Source: Epithemia pelagica (lineage: Eukaryota > Protista > Bacillariophyta). Taken from it: DNA of 64,000 bases. Shown piece after piece: positions 1 through 33,300 of this stretch. Every line of letters begins with the position of its first letter. Position 1 is the first letter of the stretch. A program made the position numbers and the translations under genes. Location of the stretch: the NCBI GenBank assembly GCA_946965045.2, contig OX337236.1, forward strand, positions 1 through 64,000. Direction: 5' to 3'. The notes under the pieces were generated by a model. The model was not told where the DNA came from, made no database searches, and saw only the letters and a program-made list of their open reading frames with translations.

Positions 1-526
1 CCCTAACCCTAACCCTAACCCTAACCCTAACCCTAACCCTAACCCTAACCCTAACCCTAACCCTAACCCTAACCCTAACCCTAACCCTAACCCTAACCCT
101 AACCCTAACCCTAACCCTAACCCTAACCCTAACCCTAACCCTAACCCTAACCCTAACCCTAACCCTAACCCTAACCCTAACCCTAACCCTAACCCTAACC
201 CTAACCCTAACCCTAACCCTAACCCTAACCCTAACCCTAACCCTAACCCTAACCCTAACCCTAACCCTAACCCTAACCCTAACCCTAACCCTAACCCTAA
301 CCCTAACCCTAACCCTAACCCTAACCCTAACCCTAACCCTAACCCTAACCCTAACCCTAACCCTAACCCTAACCCTAACCCTAACCCTAACCCTAACCCT
401 AACCCTAACCCTAACCCTAACCCTAACCCTAACCCTAACCCTAACCCTAACCCTAACCCTAACCCTAACCCTAACCCTAACCCTAACCCTAACCCTAACC
501 CTAACCCTAACCCTAACCCTAACCCT
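1..526. repeat. Telomeric repeat array (CCCTAA)n, i.e. TTAGGG on the minus strand; left chromosome end
   Basis: 87 perfect CCCTAA units (1-522) plus CCCT, starting at base 1 of the window. Confidence 0.99.
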
Positions 527-3500
527 TGCGCATCATGTTGCACATCATCATCGCACTCAAATTCACACTCAAAACACAAGACGACAAAATCCACTACACT
601 ATACACCAAGTTCGCATAGCACGAAACACACCTTCCCACTTGATGAACAAAAATCGCAAAACATCAATAGATAAACCATTCAAATACCGTCAAGACACAC
701 CACTTGCGCATCATGTCGCACATCGACATCGCACTCAAATTCACACTCAAAACACAAGACAACAAAATCCACTACACTATACACCAAGTTCGCATAGCAC
801 GAAACACACCTTCCCACTTGATGAACAAAAATCGCAAAACATCAATAGATAGATCATTCAAATACCGTCAAGACACACCACTTGCGCATCATGTCGCACA
901 TCGACATCGCACTCAAATTCACACTCAAAACACAAGACAACAAAATCCACTACACTATACACCAAGTTCGCATAGCACGAAACACACCTTCCCACTTGAT
1001 GAACAAAAATCGCAAAACATCAATAGATAGATCATTCAAATATCGTCAAGACACACCACTTGCGCATCATGTCGCACATCATCATCCCACTCAAATTCAC
1101 ACTCAAAACACAAGACAACAAAATCCACTACACTATACACCAAGTTCGCATAGCACGAAACACACCTTCCCACTTGATGAACAAAAATCGCAAAGCATCA
1201 ATAGATAGATCATTCAAATACCTTCAAGACACACTACTTGCGCATCATGTTGCACATCATCATCGCACTCAAATTCACACTCAAAACACAAGACAACAAA
1301 ATCCACTACACTATACACCAAGTTCGCATAGCACGAAACACACCTTCCCACTTGATGAACAAAAATCGCAAAACATCAATAGATAGACCATTCAAATACC
1401 TTCAAGACACACCACTTGCGCATCATGTCGCACATCATCATCGCACTCAAATTCACACTCAAAACACAAGACAACAAAATCCACTACACTATACACCAAG
1501 TTCGCATAGCACGAAACACACCTTCCCACTTGATGAACAAAAATCGCAAAACATCAATAGATAGATCATTCAAATATCGTCAAGACACACCACTTGCGCA
1601 TCATGTTGCACATCATCATCGCACTCAAATTCACACTCAAAACACAAGACGACAAAATCCACTACACTATACACCAAGTTCGCATAGCACGAAACACACC
1701 TTCCCACTTGATGAACAAAAATCGCAAAGCATCAATAGATAGATCATTCAAATACCTTCAAGACACACTACTTGCGCATCATGTCGCACATCGACATCGC
1801 ACTCAAATTCACACTCAAAACACAAGACAACAAAATCCACTACACTATACACCAAGTTCGCACAGCACGAAACACACCTTCCCACTTGATGAACAAAAAT
1901 CGCAAAACATCAATAGATAGACCATTCAAATACCTTCAAGACACACCACTTGCGCATCATGTCGCACATCATCATCGCACTCAAATTCACACTCAAAACA
2001 CAAGACAACAAAATCCACTACACTATACACCAAGTTCGCATAGCACGAAACACACCTTCCCACTTGATGAACAAAAATCGCAAAACATCAATAGATAAAC
2101 CTTTCAAATACCTTCAAGACACACCACTTGCGCATCATGTCGCACATCGACATCGCACTCAAATTCACACTCAAAACACAAGACAACAAAATCCACTACA
2201 CTATACACCAAGTTCGCATAGCACGAAACACACCTTCCCACTTGATGAACAAAAATCGCAAAACATCAATAGATAGATCATTCCATTACCTTCAAGACAC
2301 ACCACTTGCGCATCATGTCGCACATCGACATCGCACTCAAAGTCACACTCAAAACACAAGACGACAAAATCCACTACACTATACACCAAGTTCGCATAGC
2401 ACGAAACACACCTTCCCACTTGATGAACAAAAATCGCAAAACATCAATAGATAGATGCTTCAAATATACCTTCAAGACACACCACTTACGCATCATGTCG
2501 CACATCGACATCGCACTCAAATTCACACTCAAAACACAAGACAACAAAATCCACTACACTATACACCAAGTTCGCATAGCACGAAACACACCTTCCCACT
2601 TGATGAACAAAAATCGCAAAACATCAATAGATAGATCATTCAAATACCTTCAAGACACACCACTTGCGCATCATGTCGCACATCATCATCGCACTCAAAT
2701 TCACACTCAAAACACAAGACGACAAAATCCACTACACTTTACACCAAGTTCGCATAGCACGAAACACACCTTCCCACGTGATGAACAAAAATCGCAAAGC
2801 ATCAATAGATAAACCATTCAAATACCGTCAAGACACACCACTTGCGCATCATGTCGCACATCATCATCGCACTCAAATTCACACTCAAAACACAAGACGA
2901 CAAAATCCACTACACTATACACCAAGTTCGCATAGCACGAAACACACCTTCCCACTTGATGAACAAAAATCGCAAAGCATCAATAGATAACCCATTCAAA
3001 TACCTTCAAGACACACTACTTGCGCATCATGTTGCACATCGACATCGCACTCAAATTCACACTCAAAACACAAGACAACAAAATCCACTACACTATACAC
3101 CAAGTTTGCATAGCACGAAACACACCTTCCCACTTGATGAACAAAAATCGCAAAACATCAATAGATAGACCATTCAAATACCTTCAAGACACACCACTTG
3201 CGCATCATGTCGCACATCGACATCGCACTCAAATTCACACTCAAAACACAAGACAACAAAATCCACTACACTATACACCAAGTTCGCATAGCACGAAACA
3301 CACCTTCCCACTTGATGAACAAAAATCGCAAAGCATCAATAGATAGACCATTCAAATACCGTCAAGACACACCACTTGCGCATCATGTCGCACATCGACA
3401 TCGCACTCAAATTCACACTCAAAACACAAGACAACAAAATCCACAACACTATACACCAAGTTCGCATAGCACGAAACACACCTTCCCACTTGATGAACAA

Positions 3501-3958
3501 AAATCGCAAAACATCAATAGATAGACCATTCAAATACCGTCAAGACACACCACTTGCGCATCATGTCGCACATCGACATCGCACTCAAATTCACACTCAA
3601 AACACAAGACGACAAAATCCACAACACTATACACCAAGTTCGCATAGCACGAAACACACCTTCCCACTTGATGAACAAAAATCGCAAAACATCAATAGAT
3701 AGATCATTCAAATACCGTCAAGACACACCACTTGCGCATCATGTTGCACATCATCATCGCACTCAAATTCACACTCAAAACACAAGACGACAAAATCCAC
3801 AACACTATACACCAAGTTCGCATAGCACGAAACACACCTTCCCACTTGATGAACAAAAATCGCAAAGCATCAATAGATAAACCATTCAAATACCTTCAAA
3901 ACACACCACTTGCGCATCATCTCGCACATCGACATCGCACTCAAATTCACACTCAAAA
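526..3958. repeat. Subtelomeric 178-bp tandem satellite, 19 full units plus a ~49-bp partial unit
   Basis: Units start at 526, 704, 882 ... 2306, 2486 (one unit has a 2-bp insertion), 2664 ... 3732, 3910. Consensus begins TTGCGCATCATGT(C/T)GCACATC. Top strand is A/C-rich. Confidence 0.99.
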
Positions 3959-3984: not shown

Positions 3985-6900
3985 TTATTTCGAATTTAGG
4001 CGGCCAAAAAACTGAACTATCTCCGACTGTGACCGGTAGATTTTCTTGAATGCAACGATGAAGGAACACTTTTCTTTTTCAGCATGCTCTGAAATCAATC
4101 TCTTGATTTGCTTTCGATATGGATGAGCACAAACACCACCTTTATAAGCTGGATCAAAGCAACCCAAGCATGCCTTGCGATGTGTGGCGACCCAAGTCAT
4201 GAACTCCTTTCCTTCTGGACTCACATATACGTACTTATGCCCTTGTTTTTGTTTTCGAAGTACACAAATCTCACCTCGACCATGTATACCACCACAATCA
4301 AAGCATGATCCACTTCGACAGTCAACACCGTTACACCCTGGGGTATGGCAGTAGAAACACTTTTCTCGCAATTGTCGAAGGTTTTCGTTTGCCTTTTCCT
4401 TCCAGACGTTCTCCCTTACTTGATTCTCTCGTCGTACAAGGCCATGTTCTTGCACTTCATTGAACTTGTTTCGTTGTGTTGCATATGGATTTGGAACCCG
4501 ACTTTTTTTAGCAAGTGGCTGTATAGCACCGGTAGCACATGGAATAGCTTTTTTAGACATTGTACTTGGTTCCAAGGGTGTTCTTCGGATCACATTTTGG
4601 CCACCTTGCTCAATATCTTTGGCATGTCTTTTTCGTATGCCGTCATTGTCACTGGTTGAATTTCCATCATATATCCACAGAATTCCTTTCCAGCAGTTGG
4701 TGCACCGCCCACACTGGTGTTCTGTATGATATTCGAAACAACGACAGAGGTTTGTCTTCATACATCCCTCTTTAGTCAACCACATCTTCAATCCATGCAT
4801 TGTGAAGCAGTCAGTAACACAGTCAAGGCTTTCCTCATTTGTGAGCAAACCAATTTCTCTCAGATAGTCCAAACGTCTCTTAGTCTTTACCCGGATTGCC
4901 CCATCATTGTTGAAGTCTTGAAACGGGATTAGAATATGGACAGAAGAATTATTTCCACGTTGTGACGGCCTTAGTCTTCCCATGGACTGTACAACATTTG
5001 AGCAATCATACAACATGCCAATGATCATGATTGCTCTGCATCTTTGATTCTCATTACCGACCAAGGTACAGGTCGTTCCCACAAGAATATTTGTAGTACC
5101 GTCTGCACAGGAAGATGCCACGCCATCTCTAACCTGTTGTTCACTCTCCGAAGTTAACTTCTCAACATTCAAGCCAGGATGAGATAAGCACAGTGCTTCA
5201 TAAACCTCCAAAACCATATCCTTGCTTGCACAAATCACGTGGACATGTCGCATGGTCTTCTCAGTCACAATGTCAACGACATCTGCCCCAACAGATTTTT
5301 GTACATATCTCACATGTAAGTCGAATCCATCACCAACTGGGTTCTCTCCCGAGAGATAATCCGACAATCCGTGATATGCAGAACCACTCAAATCGAGGAA
5401 GTCCATCAATTTCTGACCAAAACTCATCGAAATACTTCCAGACATCAGTGTTACGGCGACTCCAAGTGCAGATATTTCCCGTAGACAAGAATAGCATGGA
5501 CGGAAGTCGACCTCTGTAACGATGGTTTGTGCCTCATCGACAAAAATCCCATTCAACTTTCCATTGGAGCACCATCCAGAAAGTTTTGTTAGATGGTCTT
5601 TGAAGAAGGTCGCAAATCCATCGATTGTCATCACTATGACTTCGGGCAAGTCATCCCGTGCAAACCAGTTGGGCCAATTCTCATGACATAGATCGTTCTT
5701 TGCCAACATCTCGACACATAAACCATCATGCAAACCCAAAGTTTGTGATGCCTTTTCCAAGAAGGCTTTGACTTTGACCATTTGATAGCTAGCCAAGAAG
5801 TTGTAGGGCACAAGAAACATGTTGGTCGAAGTCTTCAGTCCTCGAATGGATTCCACCACACAACGCACCAAGATGTTCATGGTTTTGCCCGATCCACAAG
5901 GTTGAAGCATAAGTTTATGTCTTCCCGGTGAATTGGTGCACATATCAATTGCTGTTTCTTGATTGCCTCGGAATGTTGCTTCTTCATTACCCAACAACAA
6001 TCGTAATGCTTCTAACCGATGCTGACGGCTTGTTATTGTCAGCTGATGGCATACCGAGTCCACGATCATACATTTGGTACCGATGTAACGATGAAATCGG
6101 GCATAGTAGATCTCATGACTGTTGCTCACGCGTGTCTGGTAGTTGGACATTGCAGTCTGTTGGGAGTGCTTACTCAACTCACTCAATGCTGTTGAAGAGA
6201 CCAATGCCTGACTGTTGCTGTCTGGAAAGAGCAAGTTCACAAGAGAAGTCCAGAACTGTCGAACAACCACCGAACCAGGACGACTATCCAAGCTGAAAAT
6301 CTCTTGGGCAACATCCTCAAAGAAAAACCTCCGGTCATTACCATATTGTGGAAAAAATCTCCTTGCATTGGGCCCATTCCAAACTTTCAGCACCACAACT
6401 CTGTAGAGAAATAGACACCTTGCTATGATCCGAGGCATCTTGTGTTCAACGGGGGGTCGATCATAAGCTTGCAGTTTGGGTTGTTTACGACTCGGTGCAG
6501 AAACATATAAATCTTGGTAGTTTGTATTTTTCCACCGAAGCTGAGTCACATCGAGACAATGGACCTCTGAGAACCGATCTGCACCACAGCCAAAACCATG
6601 GATGGCAAATTCCATCAAGGCAGTTAGTCGTTCGAACTGACTTTTCACCAGTTCCTTGCATTCCAAATCTTGTGTGTTGGTACCATCTGGTAGCGATCCC
6701 AAACCGTTGGACCACTCCACAATAGTCAAGTCACCATCTAAGCAGAGGAATTTCTCGTATGCCTTTCCGACAAAGCATGCATCAAAAATACCGTGGGCCT
6801 TTTCCACAACCGTAGGAACGACCTTAGACCAAGGTGCTTTTTGGAATGCATGTCCATCAACAATGATATTGAAGAACTCATCGACCACAACCTCCCTTTT

Positions 6901-8250
6901 AGGAGGCTTCTCTTGATATTGCTTCCTCAAAGAATAAATCTTAGGACAGAGAAAGTGTATTGTATGACAATGTCTGTACCGTTCCATGACCTGCTCGACC
7001 AACTTGCCCTGCCCATCGTAGTATTTTAAGCCAGCCGCAACCCCACAGCGAAGCAGATGTAAAAGGTCAGCTAGAAAGAGATGAAAGAAGACATGAGATT
7101 TGAACAACCAAGTATATTCATTGACAGGGGGAAAGGGGGACTCACCAAGTTCTTGAGCGGCAACTCCACATGATTTCAACCTCAAGCCATTCTTCGTCTT
7201 AGTGAACAACCTCTGCCGAGAGAACAGTAACACTACCCCTGAGTCGGACCAACAAGAAATCTCACTGTCGAGTACCAACTCTGTCAGGAGTGACCCAAGA
7301 ACACAATTTTGGAATGCAGTGTCCACAGAGAATCCATCACCTTCAACCTGGCAGCAAAAATAGTTCCATCTCTTCCACTGCCTCTGATGCAGGAAACACA
7401 AGAGAGAGAGGAGTAGAGGTTTCACTCGTTTGTCATAATCATGTCGATGGCTGAAATTCCATGAGTGATCCACATCACCATCATGGAAAGCAAACTTAGC
7501 AATCCGACTCCGAATGTCTGCTGGAATCCCCATTACGATCGAAGCCATCCTGTCCAGAAGGTAACAACCAACCTGATAGAGTCGGTTGATTGCAGTGTTA
7601 TTTCCTCTCTTATGATACTCGGCTTCAAACATAATTCCTTGTTCAATGTCTCCAAGGGCATTCTCCAACGTGCCAGGAATCATATTACTCAGTACATTGG
7701 GCCACCTTCCCAAAGTATCGCTTGGATGCAATAATGGTTCAATCGAACTTGCAAACTCGTTGGGTAACCTGCTGCAGGGCAGCGGCATGGTAAATGTTGA
7801 ATTCTCAACTTGAATTATTGGGGTCCAGTTGGTTTCTTGCTGCATGGTTTCTCTTTGGGGCCTTGGCATGAAGCATCCACACTTCAGCTTGTGGAAGGTC
7901 TTCGGAATCACTTCAGCATTGTTGCAACAACCAGCAGTGTGCTTCTCGCACAAAAGCTTCTTGTGAAACATCTTGTCACAGTGACCACAGAAATACTTGA
8001 TATCTGTTTCCTTGGACTCGTGTATGAAACAATCAAACGGTTGGTTGTTGGCATTCTCCACCAAGTCGTGTATCTTTTTTCCAAGATGTCTTCCAGGGAA
8101 CCGAAATGACACTGCATGAACCTCAGAGCAAGTCTTGGCGTGACGAGCAAGGCACTTCATGTTTGCTCGGAAACCAACACCACAGAGTTTACAGACCAAG
8201 CCACAGGGTGTGGCAAAGTCCACAAGCCCCAAGTAATCGTCAAACTCCAT
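3985..8250 (-). CDS. Telomere-linked helicase (TLH-like): N-terminal Zn fingers + tyrosine-recombinase-like domain + RecQ-like SF2 helicase + RQC-like Zn site + C-terminal Cys cluster; ~1396 aa after removing one predicted 75-nt intron (7071-7145)
   Basis: Open ORF 3985-8277; first ATG at 8250 in gccaccATGg context. Zn fingers CKLC..RHAKTC..H and CGHC..CEKHTAGC. YR-like residues GADRFSEV, SRKQ, VVVRQFW, SKHSQQTAMSNY. Helicase motifs FRGNQETAI, PCGSGKT, FVDEAQ, DFRPCY, QSMGRLR, then C..CGRCTNC. An in-frame GTGAGT...TTTCTAG intron is visible. Confidence 0.9.
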   Translation of the reverse strand: MEFDDYLGLVDFATPCGLVCKLCGVGFRANMKCLARHAKTCSEVHAVSFRFPGRHLGKKIHDLVENANNQPFDCFIHESKETDIKYFCGHCDKMFHKKLLCEKHTAGCCNNAEVIPKTFHKLKCGCFMPRPQRETMQQETNWTPIIQVENSTFTMPLPCSRLPNEFASSIEPLLHPSDTLGRWPNVLSNMIPGTLENALGDIEQGIMFEAEYHKRGNNTAINRLYQVGCYLLDRMASIVMGIPADIRSRIAKFAFHDGDVDHSWNFSHRHDYDKRVKPLLLSLLCFLHQRQWKRWNYFCCQVEGDGFSVDTAFQNCVLGSLLTELVLDSEISCWSDSGVVLLFSRQRLFTKTKNGLRLKSCGVAAQELGESPFPPVNEYTWLFKSHVFFHLFLADLLHLLRCGVAAGLKYYDGQGKLVEQVMERYRHCHTIHFLCPKIYSLRKQYQEKPPKREVVVDEFFNIIVDGHAFQKAPWSKVVPTVVEKAHGIFDACFVGKAYEKFLCLDGDLTIVEWSNGLGSLPDGTNTQDLECKELVKSQFERLTALMEFAIHGFGCGADRFSEVHCLDVTQLRWKNTNYQDLYVSAPSRKQPKLQAYDRPPVEHKMPRIIARCLFLYRVVVLKVWNGPNARRFFPQYGNDRRFFFEDVAQEIFSLDSRPGSVVVRQFWTSLVNLLFPDSNSQALVSSTALSELSKHSQQTAMSNYQTRVSNSHEIYYARFHRYIGTKCMIVDSVCHQLTITSRQHRLEALRLLLGNEEATFRGNQETAIDMCTNSPGRHKLMLQPCGSGKTMNILVRCVVESIRGLKTSTNMFLVPYNFLASYQMVKVKAFLEKASQTLGLHDGLCVEMLAKNDLCHENWPNWFARDDLPEVIVMTIDGFATFFKDHLTKLSGWCSNGKLNGIFVDEAQTIVTEVDFRPCYSCLREISALGVAVTLMSGSISMSFGQKLMDFLDLSGSAYHGLSDYLSGENPVGDGFDLHVRYVQKSVGADVVDIVTEKTMRHVHVICASKDMVLEVYEALCLSHPGLNVEKLTSESEQQVRDGVASSCADGTTNILVGTTCTLVGNENQRCRAIMIIGMLYDCSNVVQSMGRLRPSQRGNNSSVHILIPFQDFNNDGAIRVKTKRRLDYLREIGLLTNEESLDCVTDCFTMHGLKMWLTKEGCMKTNLCRCFEYHTEHQCGRCTNCWKGILWIYDGNSTSDNDGIRKRHAKDIEQGGQNVIRRTPLEPSTMSKKAIPCATGAIQPLAKKSRVPNPYATQRNKFNEVQEHGLVRRENQVRENVWKEKANENLRQLREKCFYCHTPGCNGVDCRSGSCFDCGGIHGRGEICVLRKQKQGHKYVYVSPEGKEFMTWVATHRKACLGCFDPAYKGGVCAHPYRKQIKRLISEHAEKEKCSFIVAFKKIYRSQSEIVQFFGRLNSK

Positions 8251-8316
8251 GGTGGCTGTTGTCGTTCCTATGGTCAAAATAGGTTTGGGACGTATGACCC
8301 TTTGCAGCCAAAAAAG

Positions 8317-8386
8317 AGGCCCTAAAGAGGGTCATTCACCTCAAAAACTGAAAAGGCCCTAACACCAGAGATCATTCACCTCAAAA
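8317..8386. repeat. Two ~37-bp degenerate repeats AGGCCCTAA...TCATTCACCTCAAAA, each containing a CCCTAA hexamer
   Basis: aggccctaaagagggtcattcacctcaaaa (8317) and aggccctaacaccagagatcattcacctcaaaa (8354); related motifs at 13344 and 13401. Confidence 0.75.
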
Positions 8387-8440
8387 TCTTTGAGCGACAA
8401 GAAGGAATATGGTTTACTATGGAGAGTTAATGTAGGTTCT

Positions 8441-8590
8441 GAAATCGACCTTTTTCCGGTCGAAATCGACCTTTTTCCGGTCGCACTAAATATAGCACGC
8501 AGCAATACAGTGATTTGAAATCGACCTTTTTCCGGTCGCGCATGTGATTCTACAGAGTGAACTTAGTGCGCACCGGAAAAAGGTCAATTC
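8441..8590. repeat. Cluster of a 21-bp motif GAAATCGACCTTTTTCCGGTC: three direct copies plus one inverted copy (hairpin/MITE-like)
   Basis: Direct copies at 8441, 8462, 8517. Inverted copy ttagtgcgcaccggaaaaaggtcaattc (8563-8590) pairs with 8462-8489. Confidence 0.85.
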
Positions 8591-8614
8591 CTAGCAAAAC
8601 TATTAGGATCTGAC

Positions 8615-11600
8615 ATGCGCATCCTTGCCAAAACCGGACGTCATATTACCATCGTAGGTATTGACAATCATGAATTGACTGGCCTTCCAGTTGTTACCTG
8701 TGCTGCCAAGTTTGATACAAGTGATGGACCCATTATTGGTATCTTCAATGAGTATGCCCACTATGGAAAGGGTTTATCTATCCATGCCCCAGCGCAATTT
8801 GAACATTTCGGCCTATCTGTCGACGAACAATCCGTCAAGGTTGATGGCAAACAACGCATTACTACCCTTGATGGACGTGCATTGCCCTTACGAATCAAGG
8901 ATGGCCTTGCATACATTCAATCTCTGGGAATCCCTTCTGATGACGATATGGATAAATATCCGCATATTGTGTTCACTTCACCCCATATCTGGGATCCTTC
9001 TGTACTTGACCATACCCATCCAGACCCCCATCAAGACCCTGCACCGAACTGGACATCTGTGGAGACTGATGGTAGTATGGAAACGTACCCCTATGACCAA
9101 TATGGGGAGTATACCGATCGCGTTGTATGTACTTTGAATCTCCTCCTTGATCTCCCATATGATCATGGCCCCGATACACCTTCCTTCTTTTCCATCTATG
9201 CTGATCAAGATGGCAACGACCCCACACTTCATGCGTCTGTCCACAAACTCTACAAGGAACAATACGACTGGAAGAAATTTCGCCCTTTCTTTGGGTGGCA
9301 ATCGGAAGACGTAATCGCCGATACGTTCAAGCATACAACTCGTCATGGACACATTTCCTTTGACCAGGATACCTTGAAGAAACATTTTAAGGCCCGGAAT
9401 CCTATCCTTAACCTACCACGACGGCATGAACCCGTTGCCACTGACTCCATCTTCTCCGACACCCCGGCTGTTAACCATGGTGGCAAGATTGCTCAGATTT
9501 TTGTTGGTCGTGATACTTTGGTTACTGACATTTATGGTATCAAGTCTACCAAGCAATTCGTCAATACCCTCCAGGATAACATTCGCACACGTGGTGTCAT
9601 GGAGACTTTGATCAGTGATGGTGGTTCGTCACTTATTTCCCACAAGGTCAAGGATATTCTTTGCACCCTTCTGATTGGTGAATACCGTTCCGAGCCCTAT
9701 CATCAACACCAGAACAAAGCTGAGAACCGCTACCAGACCGTTAAGCGTATGACCAATGCTATCATGAATGCCTCTGGTTGCCCTGCTTCTGCATGGTTAC
9801 TTTGTTTAGAATATGTGTGTGACCTCCTCAATCACACTTCCTCTCCCACCCACTCTGGCCGCACCCCTCTTGAGGCTCTTACCGGTACCCCACCCGACAT
9901 TACCCATCTCCTTTTCTTTCCTTTCTGGGATGAGGTCTACTATCGTGTCGACCCTTCTGAACCTACCTCCGGTTCTTACCCTTCGTCTCCCGACGAGAAG
10001 CTTGGCCACTGGGTTGGTTTTGCCCACAATGTTGGTGATGCCTTTACTTGGAAGATCCTCACTGCCGACAACGTCATCATCTACCGTTCCGCTGTCCGTC
10101 GCGTTGCCTCCACTACCCCCAACCTTCGTGTGGATATCTCTTCAGGGGAGGAGTCGCCGCATAAACCCACTGACAAGCAAGGTGACACTGTCTTTATTCG
10201 CAGCAGAAGTGAAGACCCATCCACACCTATGCCAACAATTGACTACGACGATTTAGTTGGACGCACATTCCTTTGTGACACTGAAGAGAATGGGGAGCGC
10301 CACCGAGCACGAGTAATCAAACGAGTTGTCGACCTGGAACAAGATGCAACCAAACAAGAAGATCTACTCAAATATATCTTTCGCAAGTCTAACTCCAATG
10401 TTGATGAGATGATCTCCTACAACCAGCTCATGGAATACATTGAAAGGGATAATCAAGCCCAAACGACAGGGGATAGTCTCTTCTGATTCAGAGACGTTAT
10501 TGCACACCAAGGACCTTTGAACTCAAGCGACCCAGACTATAAAGGGAGTAAATATAATGTCCTTGTTGATTGGGAGACTGGGGAGACGACAAACGAACCT
10601 CTATCTCTTATTGCAAATGATGACCCCATCACAGTCGCCATCTATGCCAAGAAAAATGGTTTGCTGGATCTACCTGGATGGAAACATCTCAAGCGATACG
10701 TCAAGACAAGCAAAAGACTCATTCGAGCAGCTAAACAATCCAGGATCAAACAAATTCGTCGCTCTATCAAGTACAAGTTTGGTTTCCAAGTACCTCGCAC
10801 CTATGAAGAAGCAGTGGAACTAGACAAGCAATTTGGGAACACGAAATGGCAAGACACAACAGAATTGGAACTCTCACAGATCCAATCGTATAACACTTTC
10901 AAGGACCATGGAAAAGCCAAGTTCATTAATGGGAAATTGGCCAATGCACCAGAAGGATATCATAAGATAAGAGTACATCTGGTCTTTGATGTCAAGCATG
11001 TTGGAAGGCACAAGGCACGACTTGTCGCAGATGCACATCTTACCAAGGAACCCGTTGAGACCATCTATTCAGGGGTTGTCTCCATTCGCAACCTTCGCGT
11101 TGCCATATTTCTTGGAACCATGAACGACATGGAAATATGGGGAGCAGATATTAGGAATGCATACCTAGAAGCATTGACAGGAGAGAAGATTTTCATCATT
11201 GCAGGACCAGAGTTCAAGGAGTTAGAAGGACATATCTTGATCATCTACAAGGCATTATATGGTCTCAAATCCTCAGGTGCTCGCTGGCATGACAAACTGT
11301 TTGATGTCCTCATTGATATGGGATTTTCTCCAAGCAAGGCTGACCCTGATATTTGGATGAAGAAGGCTCCTGGAGAAGACTGTTATGAATATATCGCTGT
11401 ATATGTTGATGACTTAGCTATCGTTGCCATGGACCCTGAAGTTGTCTGCAAGATCTTTACAGAAAAATACAACTTCAAACTCAAATGAGTCGGACCTATC
11501 GAGTATCATTTGGGGTGTCGTTATACCAAAGATCCAGACGGTACACTTGTGTCTGACCCACGAAGGTACATCGAGAAGATGATGGATACCTATGAACGAT

Positions 11601-12529
11601 TGTTCAATGAGAAACCCAAGAAAGCAAAGCCGCCAGTCATTGCTAACGATCATCCTGAACTCGATGACTCTGAGCTCTTAGATGAAGAAGGGACCCAGCA
11701 TTTCCAGACTCTTATTGGACAACTGCAATGGCTAATTACCATTGGCCGTTTTGATGTCTTTCCTGCTACCATGACTCTATCAAGGTTCAGAGCTGCTCCA
11801 AGGATTGGTCATTTGAAGCAAGCTAAACGCATCTATGGATACCTCATGTCATTTCCTGATGGGTCTATCAGATTCCGCACTGGGGAGCCAGATTTATCAG
11901 CTTTACCTATCCAAGAATACGATTGGAGTCGTACCGTATACATGGACGCCAAGGAACGTATCCCTGAGGACTGTCCAACCCCACTTGGACGTTTTGTGAC
12001 AACTATACATTATGTCGACGCAAATCTCATGCATGATATGGTTACTGGGAAAGCAGTTACAGCCATCCTGCATTTTGTAAATGGTACACCCGTGGACTGG
12101 TACAGTAAGCGACAAGCCACAGTGGAAGCAGCCACGTATGGATCTGAATTTGTTGCCGCAAGGACTGCAGTTGATCAGATCACGGAGCTACGCCTTACAC
12201 TCCGATACTTGGGAGTCCCTCTGCGAGAGAAGAGTTACATGTTTGGAGATAACCGCTCTGTCGTTATCAATAGCACCGCACCACACTCAATCATCTCCAA
12301 GAGGCACCATCTCCTATCCTATCACCGAGTCCGTGAAGCTATCGCTGCAAAGTACGTCGCATTCTACTGGAAAGATGGAAAGACAAACCCAGCTGATATT
12401 CTCAGTAAACATTGGGAATTCGCCGCAGTTTGGCCCATGCTCAGATCTTTGTTATTCTGGAGAGGAAAAATCCAGGAAAGTGATGAGGGAATTGACAATC
12501 CTCATTCGACAAATTGTGGGGAGTGTTAG
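8615..12529 (+). pseudogene. pol: copia pol (integrase-RT-RNase H) interrupted by two in-frame TGA stops at 10484-10486 and 11486-11488
   Basis: ORFs 8615-10486, 10517-11488 and 11510-12529 share one frame. Sequence reads LF*FRDVIAHQGP and KLK*VGPIEYHLG across the stops. Confidence 0.9.
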
Positions 12530-13253
12530 GATTCCCACCGAAAACTAGGTGGCGAAACCTACAACTCATCGAATGATGCTAGTATTTTATGGCATCCGAT
12601 GGCATTTTCCTAAAAGTGAGAAAAGAATGTCGGCATGCTCGCGAAACTATAAATTTGGCCACGGCATGCTCGCATTGCACGCGTTATCGGCGACCGCTCG
12701 GATATTAACTATGGCCCAACACGTGCGCGCCCAAAACTATCAAGTGCGCGCCTCTACTATCCGAGTACGCGCATCCACGATTCGACCTAACGGTCTATGT
12801 AATCAAAGCACGAACCACGATCACGCGAGACCATATCTCTGTTCCCACAAATCCAAGAATGCAAACAGCAACGCGCCCAGGACAAGACTTATACCACGAC
12901 AAAGCAAGAGCTGTTGCATCCCATACATGTTATCCATCACCCTATACATTCAATATACACCAATGCCGGTCTACTCCAACCAGTGAGGACCTATCACACC
13001 AGATCCATGGCCGTATACAAGAGCCAGGACTTCGGCACCATCAACCACCTTAGTTAGTAATCGTCTCACAATCATTAATATCACCATTTTAACACTCATC
13101 ATAAGACTAACCTCTTATCAGTGGACCGACTGCCCCCACCCACGGCGGACTTCGACTTGCAATATTGGTTGGTGATTCGATTGTCGGCTCAGCGAGCCTT
13201 TTACCTATCCTACCTACCTGTCTAACCCCTGTTGAATCGAGAGAAGTTTATCA
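12524..13253 (+). repeat. 3' LTR of the copia element; right end uncertain (TTATCA at 13120 or 13253)
   Basis: Starts TG directly after the polypurine tract. Two candidate ...TATCA ends. Short GTGCGCGC..ACTAT-type repeats at 12721-12785. No 5' LTR is available to confirm the boundary. Confidence 0.6.
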
Positions 13254-13520
13254 CTACCAAGGAATCCATATGCAAAGAAAGCATTCAAGTAGATAGTATT
13301 AAGTTAGTAGTTACAATGTGTCGGGTTAAAGACCATCATCAAAAGGCCCATAGAGGAGTCATCTCACAAAAAATCTAATCACGTCTCACAAAAAAATATT
13401 AGGCCCAAAGAAGGGTCATTTCACACAAAAATCTGACCCAGTCACACTTGTAGTGACGGGAAATGAAACTAGTCGAGCAAAGACTAACTAATAAGCATGG
13501 GCATAGGTATGACTAGAATA

Positions 13521-13651
13521 GGGCTGTTCTAGTGGGCTGTTCTGCAGTGGGACAGCAGGCTGTTCTGCAGTGGGACAGGGCACTTCTGCAGTGGGACAGA
13601 GGGCGGTTCTGCAGTGGGACAAGTGGGATGGGGGCTGTTCTGCAGTGGGAC
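13521..13651. repeat. Minisatellite-like array of TTCTGCAGTGGGAC (5 copies, 21-31 bp spacing)
   Basis: Copies at 13540, 13563, 13584, 13607, 13638. Confidence 0.9.
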
Positions 13652-13690
13652 GCTAGAGTCTACGTAGGCCTACGGACAGGCACTTTCTCC

Positions 13691-13968
13691 TTAGGGTCTT
13701 CTTGCAAAATTTGCTCAAGGGACTGTTTTCTTGCAACAAGGAGTCGGTTGTCAGTTGCTGAGACACAGACTCCATGTTGATTTAGATGCCGCTACATGGA
13801 CCAAAGACTTTCTCCGAATGACTTCTTGCATATGCCGCATCCCATACCAAAGGGTGTCACAATTGTAGCATCTAAACATGACAAGCCAATGCCCTGATCG
13901 GAACGGATCTTCTTCACAGGCCGTCTCCGGGATGGAGATGGCGTTCCAGGCCCATTGTTGGTAGCCAT
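13691..13968 (-). pseudogene. Truncated C2H2 Zn-finger relic resembling the N-terminus of the telomere-linked helicase
   Basis: ATG at 13968 gives MATNN...TPFGMGCGICKKSFGESLWSM*RHLNQH, versus TPCGLVCKLCGVGF...LARHAKTC in the intact gene. It has an in-frame TAG and runs into the 42-bp repeat at a CCCTAA hexamer. Confidence 0.55.
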
Positions 13969-14085
13969 TGCTGGTTTCCTCGTGTGCATGGAACAGAGGA
14001 AGAGACATAACCAGCCGACTCTCAAGCAAAAGCAAGGATGGGCCTCTTTGCAAGAGTCATAATTCATGAAACAACAATGACCTTT

Positions 14086-14434
14086 TGTTGGGCCAATTGA
14101 GGTTTTCAGGTGAAGATGTTGGGCCAATTGAGGTTTTCAGGTGAAGATGTTTGGCGCGAAGGGGCACGCAGGCGACCTTTTCGCGCCAAAGAATGGGGGA
14201 ACAACTAAGAGTGCGGTAATGGTTAGTAATGAATGAAATTAAGGACTCATATTGAATATGTAATGAATGAAATTAAGGACTCATATTGAATATGAGTGCT
14301 TAGAAATTAGACTTGAGCGGGGCATAGACATTCTGTGCTCATGTGCACAAGGGGCAGTGCTCTTTTGCAACAAAAGGCATATATATCAGTGCTCATATGC
14401 ACAGATACTATAGCCCCTTGTGCTCATATGCACA
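14086..14434. repeat. Two perfect tandem duplications (31 bp x2 at 14086-14147; 34 bp x2 at 14226-14293) and a GTGCTCATATGCACA direct/inverted cluster (14334-14434)
   Basis: Read directly from the sequence. tgtgctcatgtgcacaagggg (14334) pairs imperfectly with ccccttgtgctcatatgcaca (14414). Confidence 0.85.
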
Positions 14435-17333
14435 CGTTCAAATCCTACGGTGTCTAGTACCCAAAAAAGGCAAATATCCTTAGGCAACGAAGAAGAGTCT
14501 ACGTAGGCCTACGGACAGGCACTTTCTCCTTAGGGCAGAGAAGCTCGCGACTGATCAGTCCGTGACCATGTCAGCACCGTTTGTTGGTGAGAATGACGAC
14601 GACAGTGCGATCGAGACATGAGTATTGTTGCGCCAATGGGAGTGTGGTTGGACGTTCCCCGAGGAATCTACCATAAACTACCCATGCAATGAATACATTT
14701 CATGACAAGGGGAGATTCTTGATTCACCCTGCTTGGATTCGACAGTCAGTAGCGTCCCTCACGAGCCATCATTGGTCTTTGCAGGCGGCCATTGCTGTTG
14801 GAATGACATTCTATTATATGCTGGAGTCTGTTCCATGTCCTTTCCCTTGTCACCGTGCTTGGTTTCGACAGTATAGGCTCCATAACGAGCCATTGGTGTC
14901 ACACCGCCACTTGGGATGATCCTTCTATAGCTGCATTTCGTGGCGATCTTTGCCGAGGAGGAGCATCAACACACGAGTCGTTGGTGTAGGTCGTCGTCCA
15001 TCGTGATTCGTGATTTGTCCTGTCTTGTTGCAGTTATTTCGTCCAACATAGACGGCCTCTTCTTCTTCTCTTCTTCTGTTTCTTCTCTTCTTTGTGTCAT
15101 TCCTATCGGCCGTATCGGGTGCTGTAATAATAGGCGTATCGAACAGGCACATGGTGTCAATACAAAAGATAATTTCTTCCAATGTGTCTCCACACGCCAC
15201 GTGGAAGGGATTCGGGGCAAAAGATACCTTTCCAGAGTTCCTCGCGTTTCACAATCCATTTTCTTGTCGGAGTCACAAGATTCTAAAGCCTTTCACGAAT
15301 CCACCGCTGAGAAGTAAAAACGAGGCAAAGTATCTTTTTGTGATGGCTGCCACACCAAATCGACGACGATTTGACATCGACGAGAGATGGGGCTGCCAAA
15401 CTTGATCAACACCAAAGGGAGACTTGCAAGAGAGCTTGCATGGAGCCGCAAGTTCAAGTGGAGAAGGACAACTTACAACTTGTATTGAAAAGCAAGAAGC
15501 GCAAGGTGTGAAAAACTCCCGGTATCGGAGCACTGTATATCGAGTGCTGCAATTATAGGTTTATCGAAGAGACACATCATGGTGTCAATACAAACGTGGA
15601 ACAAGGCATTCGGGGCAAAAGATACCCTTCCAGTTCATTCCTCGCGTTTCACATTCCTCTGTGGTTGGGCATGTCGCAGCACTTCCATGGTCGTTTTCGC
15701 CTTGCTCTGTGATAGCCACAGGAAAGTGGGTACTTTGCACTCTGCAATTGTTCTTGTGGATCCCTAGGGACTGATCTGACGACGATGTGGAGACGTGTCT
15801 CTCTTGGCGTTGGACTATTATGTGGGAGGTGCTCCTACAGCCCAGTATCATCGTCTACCAAGTCCTGGTCATGGCAGCCAATCACTAAATGTCTAATGCA
15901 TGAAACGCAGCATCAAGTGTCGCAGTAGCAGCTCAAGCCAGGAAAGAAACCACAATGGAATCCCATGACAAAAGTACAACAACCAAACCGCATTTGTCGT
16001 TGTCACACTGGACGAAAGAAGAACGCAATACTCAACGGGTCGCATCGCCCTTTCAAGTGTACATACGAAGATTCAAGCTGGGTGTTGGTGTGGAACGACA
16101 AGGCAGCAACACAAGCCAGAATTCAGCGAAGAAGAAGAACAATAACAACAAGTTCTAGTAGACTACAGCCAAGACATGATCGGCGCCATTCGTGGTCCTG
16201 GTTTTGTTGTTGGTACTGCTGAGTTCGGTACGAGGCTCAAATGCGGTAGGGATCGAGGTCCACCACTGCTATTAGACGACAGCCAAGGCATGATCGGCGC
16301 GGGTAGTGGTTTTGTTGGTGCTGTACGAGGCACAAAGGTTGTACTGGTCAATGTCCAATACTGCTGTTAGACATTGTTGTAATCGTGCAACAAGGTTTCG
16401 GCGGAACCGGCATTGAGAGGCAAGACATAACTTTTCGCACTGCGATTGTTCTTGTTGATACCCATGGACCGATACCCATGGACTGTTAAAGAGCCACTAC
16501 TAAGAGTGGGATTGCTGGATCGACGCATGCAAATTGCCTACCTCGTGATCAAGAATAATTGCTGTATTGGAGGAAATATCGAACATGTCGGTGGCAAAAA
16601 TTGCAAAGGGTTCTGTCACCCAAAACCACAAGCATTGAGAGAAGGGGTACTGTCCTCTCAAGCAGGCATGGGCCATAGAAGGACTGGACCCCACAATTGA
16701 AATTGAACGCATGGTCGGAAGAAGACGACTGTCCAAACGAGTCGCTGCGCCATGGTGTTTCAGGCACGCAACCATAATCTTCCACAGCGAAATAACACGA
16801 CCCATTCAACAGCAGAGAGACATGGTACCATGGACATCTACCCGAGGCCTGGCTCCACTCCTGTTTTTGGTGTCATGCTGGATGGTGTAACTTTCAGTTT
16901 TTACTAGTACAACGGTGTACATGATATCTCTATAGGTCGCAATGCCATGGAGAAAACAATGCAACTACTGTTTGAGAGTAAAATGATAATGCAATAGTTC
17001 CGCTATTGTTAGGACATACATGCAATACGTTGCAAATTTCATGACTGCTGGTCGCATGATGGTGCGCCGCTGTACATTGATTGGGAGGAAGGATTCGTGA
17101 CGACAGCCAATCCATCACATGGCCGATTCCCAATCCACACGGGTGTCAGTATTCGGGTAGGCGATAAACAATTGTTCGCGTCCCTTGATGAGCCACGATT
17201 TGAGCACGATATTCGTATTCGTCGTGTCGTCATGATACAAAATACGAATCTTGTCTCCCTCGCTGGTATCACGGCTCCTTGACCAACCGGGCGAACGTGA
17301 TAACATTGGTAGTCTATGAATTCTATAGAGATT

Positions 17334-29959: not shown

Positions 29960-30339
29960 GGTGTGTTGATCTCTTTTGATCTGGATCTTTTGGAGAACGA
30001 AGAAAAAAAAGAAAAAAGATCCGCCGGGCACCCTCGCGCGCGCGCTCTGTGCGCGCCACCCTAACACTCTGCCGGCGACATTCAAGGATGTCTGCAGTAG
30101 CTATACTATTATTTTATATCCATACATAGAGAGGACACACCTAGTTTTTTGACATCGTCCATTTTGGGGACGACAATGAGGCAACGGCGCTTTTGATCGT
30201 TCCGATCCCCTCCAACGATAGTAGTTTCTGGAAAATCGAATCATTGAACAAAACATACAAGCAAAAGGTCCGTCTTCGTTTGTCCTTTTCCATTCTTTCA
30301 GTGACACAACGTGTGTGTGTGTGACAATCGAAACATACC

Positions 30340-33300
30340 ATGAGCAGTGGTCCTCCTCCGGCTGCGGCATCCACGGCAGCGACCGGTTCTTCGTCCTCGG
30401 GTCGAGGTGGTGGTGGTGGTGGTCGCCGAAGTGGTGGTGGAGGTAGTGGACGGGGTGGAGGTCGAGGTGGTGGACGACAACAAGGAGCACGAGGAGGAGG
30501 AGGAGGACGTGGTGGTGGTACCAACAACAACAACAAGGGTGGATCCTCCTCCTCGAATAACAACAACAATAACAACAACAACGCTGGCGGTGGTGGCAAC
30601 CAAAAACAATTGCGAGGCGGTGGTGGTGGAGGCAATTCCAATCAAAAGGCGGCTGGAAATAACAATAACAAGGGCGGCAAGGGACGTCACCATCACAAGA
30701 AAGATTCCAAAAAAGACAATACCATTAATACCACGGCGCCCTTGTCGGAAGAAGACAAGAAACGATTGGAACAAGAGCGATTGGCTAAGGAAGCCAAGGC
30801 CCGTCAAGAAGAAGAACAAAAGGCGGCGGCGCAACGAGAAAAACAAGCGGCAGCCGCCGCCAAGGCTCGGGCCGATCAACAACGAGCCTTGGATCAAGGC
30901 ATTCAAGAAGATATTACCACCCTGGCAACCCTCATTGACGCGGTTCATCAACACCAAGTATATCGACAAAGCATGTCGGAACCAGCGCTCCAAGAATCCC
31001 GAAAATCCTTTGAACGCAACAAGAAACAACTCAAGACCGATTTGAAAAAATGTACCGCCTTTGTCAAAAAAATCAAATCCGGTGCAGCCTGGTCGCTCAA
31101 ACCGGCCGATGTCGTTCACGATGTGGCCTCGCTCAATTTGAGTCGTTATGTGGAAGAAGTCGTGACGGCCGTGTTGGAAGCCAAACCCAAAGTGACGGAT
31201 CTGCCCGTCATGGTGGCCTTGACGACGGCCATGCACGAACGGTATGCCGACTATTTGCCCAATTTGATTGCCTCCTTGTGGACCTTGGTGTCGCAAAAGG
31301 CCACGGTCGATACCGTCAAGGCGCGACGAGTCTATTTGCGATTGTGGACCGAGTTTTTGGTCTGTGGCGTCGTGACGGATGCTCAACCCTTGCTCCAACT
31401 CGTGGTCGAGGCCGCCGGTCCCAAGGACGGGGGAACCTCGTACGTCGTTCAAGATGCGCATTTGCTCGTGGCCTTTACCAAACAAGCCGGATCGGAACTC
31501 TTGGGCGTTACACCCACCTCCGTTACGGCGGCGGCCACTCGCATTCGAACCGAATATCAACGAAGCATGGAACAATCCGGTGAGCCCACCAATCCGGATG
31601 ACAACAACAAGGACACTGTCGATCGTCCGGTAGTGGCCACGACAGAGTTGGTCCAATCGGGCATGACCCTGGTACAACAGCTTGATCAAGTGTTGGCCGT
31701 ACGCGCGGTCGATGCCAGTGTTTCCAAGGCCGCTCTCACGCATTGTCGAGGAGCCTTTTCCTCCTTGTCCGATTCCTTGGTTCAATCCCATGTCTCGTTG
31801 CAAAAAATGGAACATCGTTGCGAACAAGATCGACTGGTTCTGGGAAGTTTGACTGAGGCCCGGGAACAAAGTTTGGCCGATGCTCGCAAACGCAAGGAAT
31901 CCCTCTTGAAATGCGTCGAACACTTGGCTGATGTCTTGAATCAACCCCTTCCCCAATTGCAAGATGCCCAAGAAGAACTCAATCCGGATGGACCCGGCAT
32001 TGAAGTCTTGACCGCGTCTGCGGGAGGAGATGGTGAAACGACCAATTTGGGACCCTTTGATGATGAAGAAACCCGCGCCTTTTATTGCGATATTCCCGAT
32101 TATGTCACCACCATTCCACCCGCCTTGCTCGGCTTGAGTTTGGAGGCCATTGAAAGCAAAAAGCTCGAAAATATGACCAAATATGGCGGCGATGCAGCCG
32201 ATGCGGACATGGAAGATGACACGGTGGTGGAATCCGACGCAGACTTGGCAGTCAGTGCCGAAGGACTCGACGCCGAATTGGATGCCACCGCGGTGGCCGG
32301 CGATGGTATTGCAGCCACCACCGAGGAAGGAGAAGGTACGTGTGTACAAGGATATCCAAACGTTGGTCTATATTCCGGAGCAATGATTCTCAATACTTGT
32401 TGATTATTCGTTCGTTGGCAGGCGAAGATGAAGAGGATAAAGAAACTCCACGCTACAAGTTGACAGTGTTGCTGGAACAAGAACTGCCCGAATGTCACGG
32501 TCGAGAACAGATTGATGCCATATCGGAACGCTTTTGTTCCAATCATGGATCCTCCAAGAATGCCCGCAAACGATTGGCCAAGACATTGTTTCAGATTCCC
32601 CATGCGCGTCTCGATCTCTTGCCGTTTTATTCTCGAATGGCAGCCACGGTGGATCGAGTGTGGAACGATGCCACCTCACAGCTTTTGGTTGACCTCGAAC
32701 AACAATTTCATGGTCAGGCCAAGTTCAAAAAGAATCAGAATGTGGAATCTCGTATGCGGACAGCTCGGTACATTGGCGAATTGACCAAGTTTCGGGTCGC
32801 TCCACCCATTGTCTTTTTGCGGTGTATTCGTCGGTGTCTCGATGACTTTACCGGAAACAATGTGGATATAGCCTGTTGCCTCTTGGAGTCCTGTGGACGG
32901 TTTCTCTACAAGCTCAAACACACCAACCCCAAAATCACGACTATTATGGAATCCATGGCACGTCTGGGAAAAGCAAAGGTAGGTTGCTGTGGTTCGTACT
33001 CCGATACCAAAGAAGATCTTCACCTGTACGTTGAGAAAGAATCTTACGCCTCTTGACCCGTTTGGGTTAAAAACAAACAAAACAATAGTATCTCGACGAA
33101 CGCCTCCAGTCGTTGATCAAAGCAGCCTTTTTCAGCGTCAAACCACCGCAAAGTGGATCGCGTCGATTGGCCAAAGAGTATCCGCCCTTGGAAGCCTATC
33201 TGCGATACTTGCTCATGGTGCGTTTGGAACCGACCGATGGCACAGTCACGGATGTTGTCAAACAGCTGATGCGATTCCCCTGGAACAATCCCGCTACGGA

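Follow-up and report, generated by a model that had tools for sequence, protein, structure and literature searches.

Helicase genes have been known for decades at the chromosome ends of yeast (Y' elements) and of fungi and a choanoflagellate (TLH genes), and both their spread to nearly every end and their conserved non-helicase domain are unexplained. A role at eroded telomeres has been suggested for Y' elements (PMC1635262, PMC4522978). TLH proteins possess two N-terminal zinc fingers and, just upstream of a RecQ helicase, a "TLH domain" of approximately 250 amino acids without assigned function, and some of them have extra zinc motifs (bioRxiv 10.1101/2024.02.27.582403; 10.1101/2022.03.07.483234). 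In M. oryzae, the boundary between unique DNA and the TLH region falls on the first or second C of a repeat unit with CCTAACC at its start, and the short repeat arrays stop 181 bp ahead of the TLH start codon (PMC1635262). The subject of this work is an open reading frame (ORF) of 1421 amino acids, together with the repeated chromosome-end unit that carries it, in the first 64,000 nucleotides of Epithemia pelagica contig OX337236.1 (this whole stretch is referred to as the window). The ORF appears to match the published TLH architecture, is the last gene before the telomere because its stop codon lies only 27 bp from a subtelomeric satellite, and belongs to a multi-copy subtelomeric family with many decayed copies. 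Of the features of TLH genes, a position next to the telomere, multiple copies at chromosome ends, and RecQ-type helicase motifs were found in this family. Compared by published description, a recombinase-fold domain of the right size occupies the place of the TLH domain in the window ORF. The zinc fingers of TLH proteins are of the C2H2 type, whereas those of the ORF are C2HC with the right spacing. In parallel to the TLH regions of M. oryzae, the units of the window are bounded by (C)CCTAAGG and have a leader with iterated motifs. The fungal TLH domain may correspond to the recombinase-fold domain of the window; no paper linking the TLH domain to tyrosine recombinases was found in the literature.

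Sequence comparison and structure models indicate that positions 6118-6645 of the window encode the catalytic core of a divergent domain with the tyrosine recombinase (YR)/type IB topoisomerase fold. On the same grounds, this core looks active, with R568, K598, R673, H704, and the predicted nucleophile Y713 in place and the first His missing. Within the ORF, zinc fingers are followed by a conserved N-terminal region, the YR-like two-domain module, a RecQ-like helicase, and a Cys-rich tail. From its mechanical start the ORF has 1430 codons (3985-8277, minus strand), and the residue numbers follow this version, which was used in a preliminary description of the window made from the sequence alone; from the ATG it has 1421. 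The features of the ORF are the following.

3985-8250, minus strand: intact ORF, 1421 amino acids from the ATG at 8250, transcribed toward the telomere
7924-8205, minus strand: two zinc-finger-like motifs, C29-x2-C32-x13-H46-x3-C50 and C97-x2-C100-x12-H113-x3-C117, read from the translation
6691-7080, minus strand: N-terminal subdomain of the conserved module (amino acids 400-529), mostly helical, from alignment and model
6043-6690, minus strand: predicted YR/topoisomerase IB-fold catalytic domain (amino acids 530-745), which includes 6118-6645, from conservation, model, Foldseek, and profile alignment
6574-6576, minus strand: R568, Arg-I, aligning with lambda R212, Cre R173, and TelK R275
6484-6486, minus strand: K598, in the turn after a beta-hairpin strand, aligning with lambda K235 and Cre K201
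6259-6261, minus strand: R673, Arg-II, aligning with lambda R311 and TelK R383, with V670 replacing the His of HxxR
6166-6168, minus strand: H704, aligning with lambda H333 and TelK H416, invariant in the family
6139-6141, minus strand: Y713, predicted nucleophile, aligning with lambda Y342 and TelK Y425
4975-5964, minus strand: superfamily 2 (SF2) helicase core, DEAD and Helicase_C, from Pfam and alignment
4108-4785, minus strand: Cys-rich C-terminal region, with a cluster of four Cys residues downstream of the helicase and CCHC motifs resembling zinc knuckles, from translation and alignment

The preliminary description had named these five residues, and all of them were found at the claimed codons with the surrounding sequence as quoted; Val occupies the position three residues ahead of R673. 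Its statement that the His or Trp lies 9 residues from the nucleophilic Tyr in known enzymes was borne out on the retrieved sequences of lambda Int (H333/Y342), Cre (W315/Y324), and TelK (H416/Y425); accessions for these phage sequences were taken from PMC2684143. The catalytic sets used for comparison are R212, K235, H308, R311, H333, and Y342 in lambda Int, R173, K201, H289, R292, W315, and Y324 in Cre, and R275, K300, K380, R383, H416, and Y425 in TelK, which, as had been claimed, is without the His of HxxR (K380-x-x-R383). The motif [HW]-x8-Y is found four times in the ORF, and the five-residue pattern alone constitutes weak evidence.

Conservation across homologues had been proposed as a check, and it held, the five positions being conserved at 97-100%. 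An exhaustive HMMER search with residues 150-760 as query identified 179 representative proteins, 108 of them at an E value of at most 1e-10; the block common to this family comprises residues ~400-740, and many members are 1300-1600 amino acids long. Column percentages were taken from a hidden Markov model (HMM) alignment with 113-133 homologues per column and pairwise identities of at most 50%, in which R568 was conserved at 98%, K598 at 99%, R673 at 97%, H704 at 100%, and Y713 at 97%. These five are among just eight columns conserved at 95% or more, MAFFT alignments agree, and the complete R-K-R-H-Y set is present in 101 of the 108 members that cover all five columns. Judged from these alignments, the five-residue pattern exceeds chance. 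The ratio of non-synonymous to synonymous changes among recent copies was also considered, but the catalytic domain of three copies shows only 3 synonymous and 2 non-synonymous differences, too few to mean anything.

The conservation pattern bears on the idea that the domain is a catalytically dead, recombinase-derived DNA-binding module, comparable to those of domesticated Crypton genes, with no other task than to bring the helicase to subtelomeric DNA. The first canonical His is indeed missing from the whole family, its column containing L (44%), T (23%), I (8%), or V (6%), no Lys, and Arg or Asn in single members, and most copies in this genome are decayed. However, loss or replacement of the HxxR His is tolerated in recombinases and type IB topoisomerases, TelK having a Lys there, and the retention of the other five positions, Tyr included, at an overall identity of ~25% is unexpected for a module that only binds DNA. 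A dead module is consequently regarded as improbable.

The fold was predicted with AlphaFold2. The model of residues 400-760, based on an 88-row alignment, reached a predicted local distance difference test (pLDDT) value of 91.9 and a predicted template modeling (pTM) score of 0.85, and that of the catalytic part (residues 530-750) a pLDDT of 87.4 and a pTM of 0.82. A Foldseek search of the PDB with the two-domain model returned almost only Cre, XerH, Flp, XerA, poxvirus and human topoisomerase I, TelA, and HP1 integrase, at E values of 0.1-1. With the catalytic domain, all of the approximately 50 top matches were YRs or type IB topoisomerases, the best being XerA (E value of 3.6e-3, probability 1.0) and XerH (probability 1.0, template modeling (TM) score of 0.57, root mean square deviation of 5.9 over 203 columns), and the viral Foldseek library gave integrases and type IB topoisomerases exclusively. 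In a full-length profile alignment, all six positions were in register with lambda Int and P2 Int, and 5 of the 6 with TelK; the profile comparisons rest on single comparators.

The preliminary description had further likened the active site to that of protelomerases. What stood of its claim is the presence of a catalytic set of the YR/topoisomerase IB type within a domain of that fold, whereas the specific likeness to protelomerases did not hold. A protelomerase-like resolvase that makes or resolves hairpin chromosome ends would agree with the location at a chromosome end, with the missing HxxR His, as in TelK, and with the register of TelK just mentioned. However, TelA was only rank 12 in the two-domain search (E value of 0.21, probability 0.35), no protelomerase was among the top 49-50 matches of the catalytic domain, and hhalign scores for TelK and TelN were weaker than those for Cre or P2 Int. 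TelN, aligned with its homology to TelK as a guide, was in register at just 2 of the 6 positions (H704 and Y713), and the position of the TelK Lys is taken in the family by Thr or a hydrophobic residue. Furthermore, the chromosome end is a normal (TTAGGG)n tract of at least 526 bp rather than a hairpin, and the vicinity of the unit ends yielded no palindromic target. Such a resolvase is therefore considered highly improbable.

The modules that flank the recombinase-like domain were compared in 33 full-length members of the family. H46, C97, C100, and H113 of the zinc-finger-like motifs are near-invariant; the Pfam zf-C2H2 family gave only weak matches to these motifs, whose fourth ligand is Cys and not His. 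The subdomain formed by amino acids 400-529 is possibly the counterpart of the core-binding domain of recombinases. The helicase shows no variation in the Lys of Walker A, the DE pair of motif II, or the Q/R/R residues of motif VI, and DEAD and Helicase_C were matched by Pfam in 33 of 33 members; for the window ORF alone, Pfam and NCBIfam show just a weak DEAD/Helicase_C pair. The nearest proteins outside the family are RecQ-type helicases, and JGI labels members as "helicase RecQ". Many Cys residues of the C-terminal zinc clusters are invariant as well.

The ORF is part of a repeated unit with a precise 5' end. The features of the chromosome end and of this unit are the following.

1-526, no strand: telomere (CCCTAA)n, 87.7 units, at the window edge
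525-3958, no strand: subtelomeric satellite of 178 bp, 19.3 copies with 96% matches, filling the interval from the ORF stop codon to the telomere
8251-8607, minus strand: 5' leader in which a 21-23-nt motif occurs three times directly (8440-8538) and once inverted (8572-8589)
8601-8607, minus strand: exact 5' end of the repeated unit, CCTAATA in the window and CCTAAGG in most other copies and in other unit types

For 8 window proteins, cluster mates occur only in ENA assembly ERZ21939226, on two contigs that look like haplotypes. Copies of the unit beyond the window are located on other contigs of this assembly. These copies are always within ~11 kb of a contig end and point outward. DNA comparison of eight copies showed that the 5' end is identical to the base; in the window it is position 8607, 357 bp upstream of the ATG. 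The upstream flanks are unrelated, and the flank base before the unit is mostly C. Two further unit types were identified in these subtelomeres, which encode proteins 24-29% identical to the window ORF and have the same starting heptamer and unrelated flanks. In five subtelomeres, the telomere-ward strand contains CCTAAGG 22 times, compared with a single occurrence on the opposite strand, and its three occurrences in the 64-kb window are all unit starts. The window harbors the only intact copy; one other copy is full length with one premature stop. A further six begin at the 5' end and extend over 6%-71% of the unit; an internal deletion is present in one of these, and small indels or a stop in some. 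Truncated copies form head-to-tail stacks, all pointing to the telomere, their lost 3' parts are absent further out, and the junctions show 2-4 nt of microhomology.

On contig L005, at ~12638, 2.5 interstitial TTAGGG repeats lie between a truncated unit and a 5'-truncated divergent gene of the family. The succession of a truncated copy and telomere repeats means that this site was once a chromosome end, and the tract marks a healed former end that was later extended. One truncation point of the unit is common to two ends (L005 9643 and L001 12746) and is followed by different unit types at each; this reflects either a hot spot or exchange at the heptamer. Each unit type has its own motif of 16-34 nt, with three or four iterations in the leader that separates the terminal heptamer from the ATG (window 8440-8589, window 13534-13621, L006 16986-17088, L001 15162-15230, and L044 8432-8557). 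These leader motifs may be protein-binding sites or promoter elements, and the "42-bp repeat" and "8441-8590 cluster" of the preliminary description are this leader motif array. A satellite ~83% identical to that of the window occupies the equivalent place at another chromosome end (L001 19691-22386).

Relatives outside this genome were found in metagenomes and in one diatom genome, none of them with a TLH name. For the protein P0090, ~25% identical and present in two metagenomes from JGI, CCTAAGG lies exactly 1440 bp ahead of the ATG at both loci, and the two loci are 100% identical from CCTAAGG on and 29% identical before it. Its gene points to (TTAGGG)n located 160 bp past the stop codon; in L044, this gap holds no satellite. 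The member P0156 is located on a contig (L051, BDSP01000271.1) of Fistulifera solaris (PMC11960938), 1.4-1.9 kb from (TTAGGG)n and pointing to it. This member has been annotated as a spliced model of 1109 amino acids, the translation of which is not colinear.

The exact 5' end and the eukaryotic host call for comparison with a Crypton-like DNA transposon, which would excise as a circle, integrate by two-site recombination, and prefer subtelomeres. Such a transposon would agree with a eukaryotic element that encodes a YR-fold protein, has a discrete 5' end, lacks terminal inverted repeats, and shows short junction microhomology, and also with a truncation point followed by different unit types at two ends, the result expected from heptamer exchange. 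However, no second heptamer or repeat is present on the 3' side, where complete units run into satellite and telomere, and the distal remainders of interrupted copies are missing; the stacked copies are therefore not nested insertions. In addition, the domain has no Pfam match to the Crypton-derived domain or to Phage_integrase. We know of no helicase in Cryptons. A Crypton-like transposon is accordingly given little credence. Two further candidates were tried and rejected: metagenome contigs L002 and L003, inspected for a circular or two-ended element, have no terminal overlap and no telomere repeats, and an apparent inverted (palindromic) junction in L004 proved to be flanked by a direct 277-nt 5' fragment of the unit.

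Another possibility is that the domain acts as a built-in, topoisomerase IB-like nicking-closing partner of the helicase that relaxes or dissolves telomeric recombination and replication intermediates and takes no site-specific part in the movement of the unit, which would spread by ordinary homologous recombination. RecQ helicases pair with separate topoisomerases, and here the fold, common to type IB topoisomerases and present among them in the Foldseek matches, is fused to a RecQ-like helicase of intact motifs. The best structural matches are nevertheless site-specific recombinases (XerA, XerH, and integrases), and a topoisomerase partner leaves unexplained the base-exact 5' ends, the heptamer held in common by ~25%-identical proteins, and the strand bias of the heptamer. 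TLH genes have been treated as host telomere-maintenance factors (bioRxiv 10.1101/2024.02.27.582403), which speaks for such a partner. On balance, this possibility appears rather unlikely.

The favored explanation is that a recombinase-helicase nicks at the 5' end of the unit and transfers the unit onto exposed chromosome ends, and it is judged about evenly poised between being right and wrong. The catalysis, substrate, and transfer pathway that these observations suggest would be as follows. The recombinase domain would nick the strand whose 3' end lies at the heptamer and become linked to the 3' phosphate via Y713. The helicase, moving 3' to 5' on the nicked strand, would peel this strand from the heptamer toward the telomere, and the enzyme-charged 3' end would be joined to the free 5'-OH of an eroded or broken chromosome end, the 3' end of which would then copy the transferred strand. 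The outcome would be units appended to chromosome ends in fixed orientation, in a mirror image of the nuclease-helicase logic of Helitrons. YRs form a 3'-phosphotyrosine that is resolved by a 5'-OH, and the direction of travel of RecQ helicases is 3' to 5'; these polarities fit the observed orientation of the units, and the short junction homologies fit a pairing of strands before joining.

Several results weigh against this explanation. Erosion, healing, and break-induced replication alone could yield much of the stacking of truncated repeats, and the junction microhomology equally fits such repair. The copy in the window itself starts with the variant heptamer CCTAATA, and at the F. solaris locus, the 6 kb upstream are devoid of the heptamer on the appropriate strand. 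Sequence libraries are silent on the domain: Pfam has no match for the catalytic domain at E values up to 10, Phage_integrase was not detected in any of 33 members, and neither phmmer nor a 29-member profile retrieved a recombinase from the PDB. The same holds for the N-terminal 760 amino acids, which matched nothing in Pfam, NCBIfam, or the PDB, be it as a single sequence or as a 29-member profile. Local hhalign comparisons of a 122-row family profile with single comparators reached probabilities of at most 5%, yet were in register, and the Foldseek scores are modest (best E value of 3.6e-3, TM scores of 0.46-0.57). As for other searches, tblastn of the domain against 50,697 phage records gave no match, and a word-based protein search returned only near-identical paralogues for the full protein and nothing for the domain alone. 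The lambda int gene was found at 99-100% identity on short contigs (L012-L043) of many unrelated bacterial assemblies, including Shewanella, Pseudomonas, Oceanobacillus, Chromatium, Pseudoxanthomonas, and others; this most likely reflects lambda DNA carried over into public assemblies.

A broader proposal, put forward tentatively and held to be somewhat doubtful, is that TLH units represent an unrecognized class of chromosome-end-specific eukaryotic mobile elements, the own YR-RecQ protein of which would recognize the heptamer and transfer one strand, and that the TLH domain of fungi and the choanoflagellate, unexplained since 2009, would be that recombinase. The conserved breaking-rejoining active site and the base-exact unit end common to ~25%-identical proteins make this hypothesis checkable by sequence comparison. 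If it is true, chromosome ends harbor self-propagating, end-specific elements that possibly provide backup capping of eroded chromosomes. The family would be extended to diatom-like algae, and the tyrosine recombinase superfamily would gain a helicase-fused, His-less branch missed by current profile libraries.

On its inward side, the unit of the window is bordered by a retroelement and, beyond it, by three stacked, older fragments of other unit types, as follows.

8608-13253, plus strand: 5'-truncated Ty1/copia-type retroelement (broken gene); the inner bound is the unit junction, the outer bound approximate
13254-13695, minus strand: 442-nt 5' fragment of the third unit type, starting with CCTAAGG, with 23-nt tandem repeats
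13696-14484, minus strand: 789-nt 5' fragment of the second unit type, starting with CCTAAGG; the protein encoded by full copies elsewhere shares 24% identity with the window ORF
14485-14534, minus strand: 50-nt fragment from the 5' end of the third unit type, beginning with CCTAAGG

The copia-type element is cut off exactly at the unit start. Its match to amino acids 585-1893 (the C-terminal 69%) of an intact polyprotein of 1893 amino acids encoded elsewhere in the assembly stays in a single frame, which contains two stop codons and is free of frameshifts. Intact 1893-amino-acid polyproteins are among the 144 members of its protein cluster in the assembly. In the rest of the window, ordinary eukaryotic genes are present as long ORFs, namely, those for ubiquitin hydrolase, Sec1, Upf2, a Kelch protein, and a JmjC protein. 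The description of the source as diatom-like is based on the relative in F. solaris, TTAGGG telomeres, a GC content of ~48%, and long intron-poor ORFs. At 30298-32403, two ORFs of ~685 amino acids each overlap fully on opposite strands, the one on the plus strand having no Pfam match.

The window unit shows similarities to, and differences from, several known systems. With Xer and lambda Int, the domain has in common the fold, the order and spacing of Arg, Lys, Arg, His, and Tyr, and the His-Tyr distance of 9. It differs from them in that the HxxR His is replaced by Leu, Thr, Ile, or Val, that Phage_integrase of Pfam is not matched, that it is fused to helicase and zinc modules in a eukaryotic host, and that no two-armed core site was found. 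Type IB topoisomerases and the protelomerases TelK, TelN, and TelA have the same superfamily fold and chemistry and likewise are without the HxxR His (Lys in TelK), but rank below the recombinases in fold searches with the window domain. These enzymes act on one duplex or on DNA ends. Like the window unit, the Y' element of Saccharomyces is a subtelomeric, helicase-encoding unit present at many ends and sometimes in tandem. Y' copies are separated by telomere-repeat tracts, and to our knowledge no recombinase-like domain exists in Y'. Cryptons are eukaryotic DNA elements with a tyrosine recombinase that also occur in stramenopiles (PMC3212892); in contrast to the window unit, they possess the canonical catalytic set, have no helicase, and insert at internal sites. 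Helitrons, which encode a Rep nuclease and a Pif1-like helicase, differ in that their HUH nuclease becomes linked to a 5' phosphate, their helicase has the opposite polarity, and their insertion is internal, whereas the window unit is found at chromosome ends. Helitrons and the window unit may nevertheless be analogous: both combine a tyrosine-based nicking domain and a helicase in one protein, both are free of terminal inverted repeats, and in both the 5' end is exact and the 3' extent varies.

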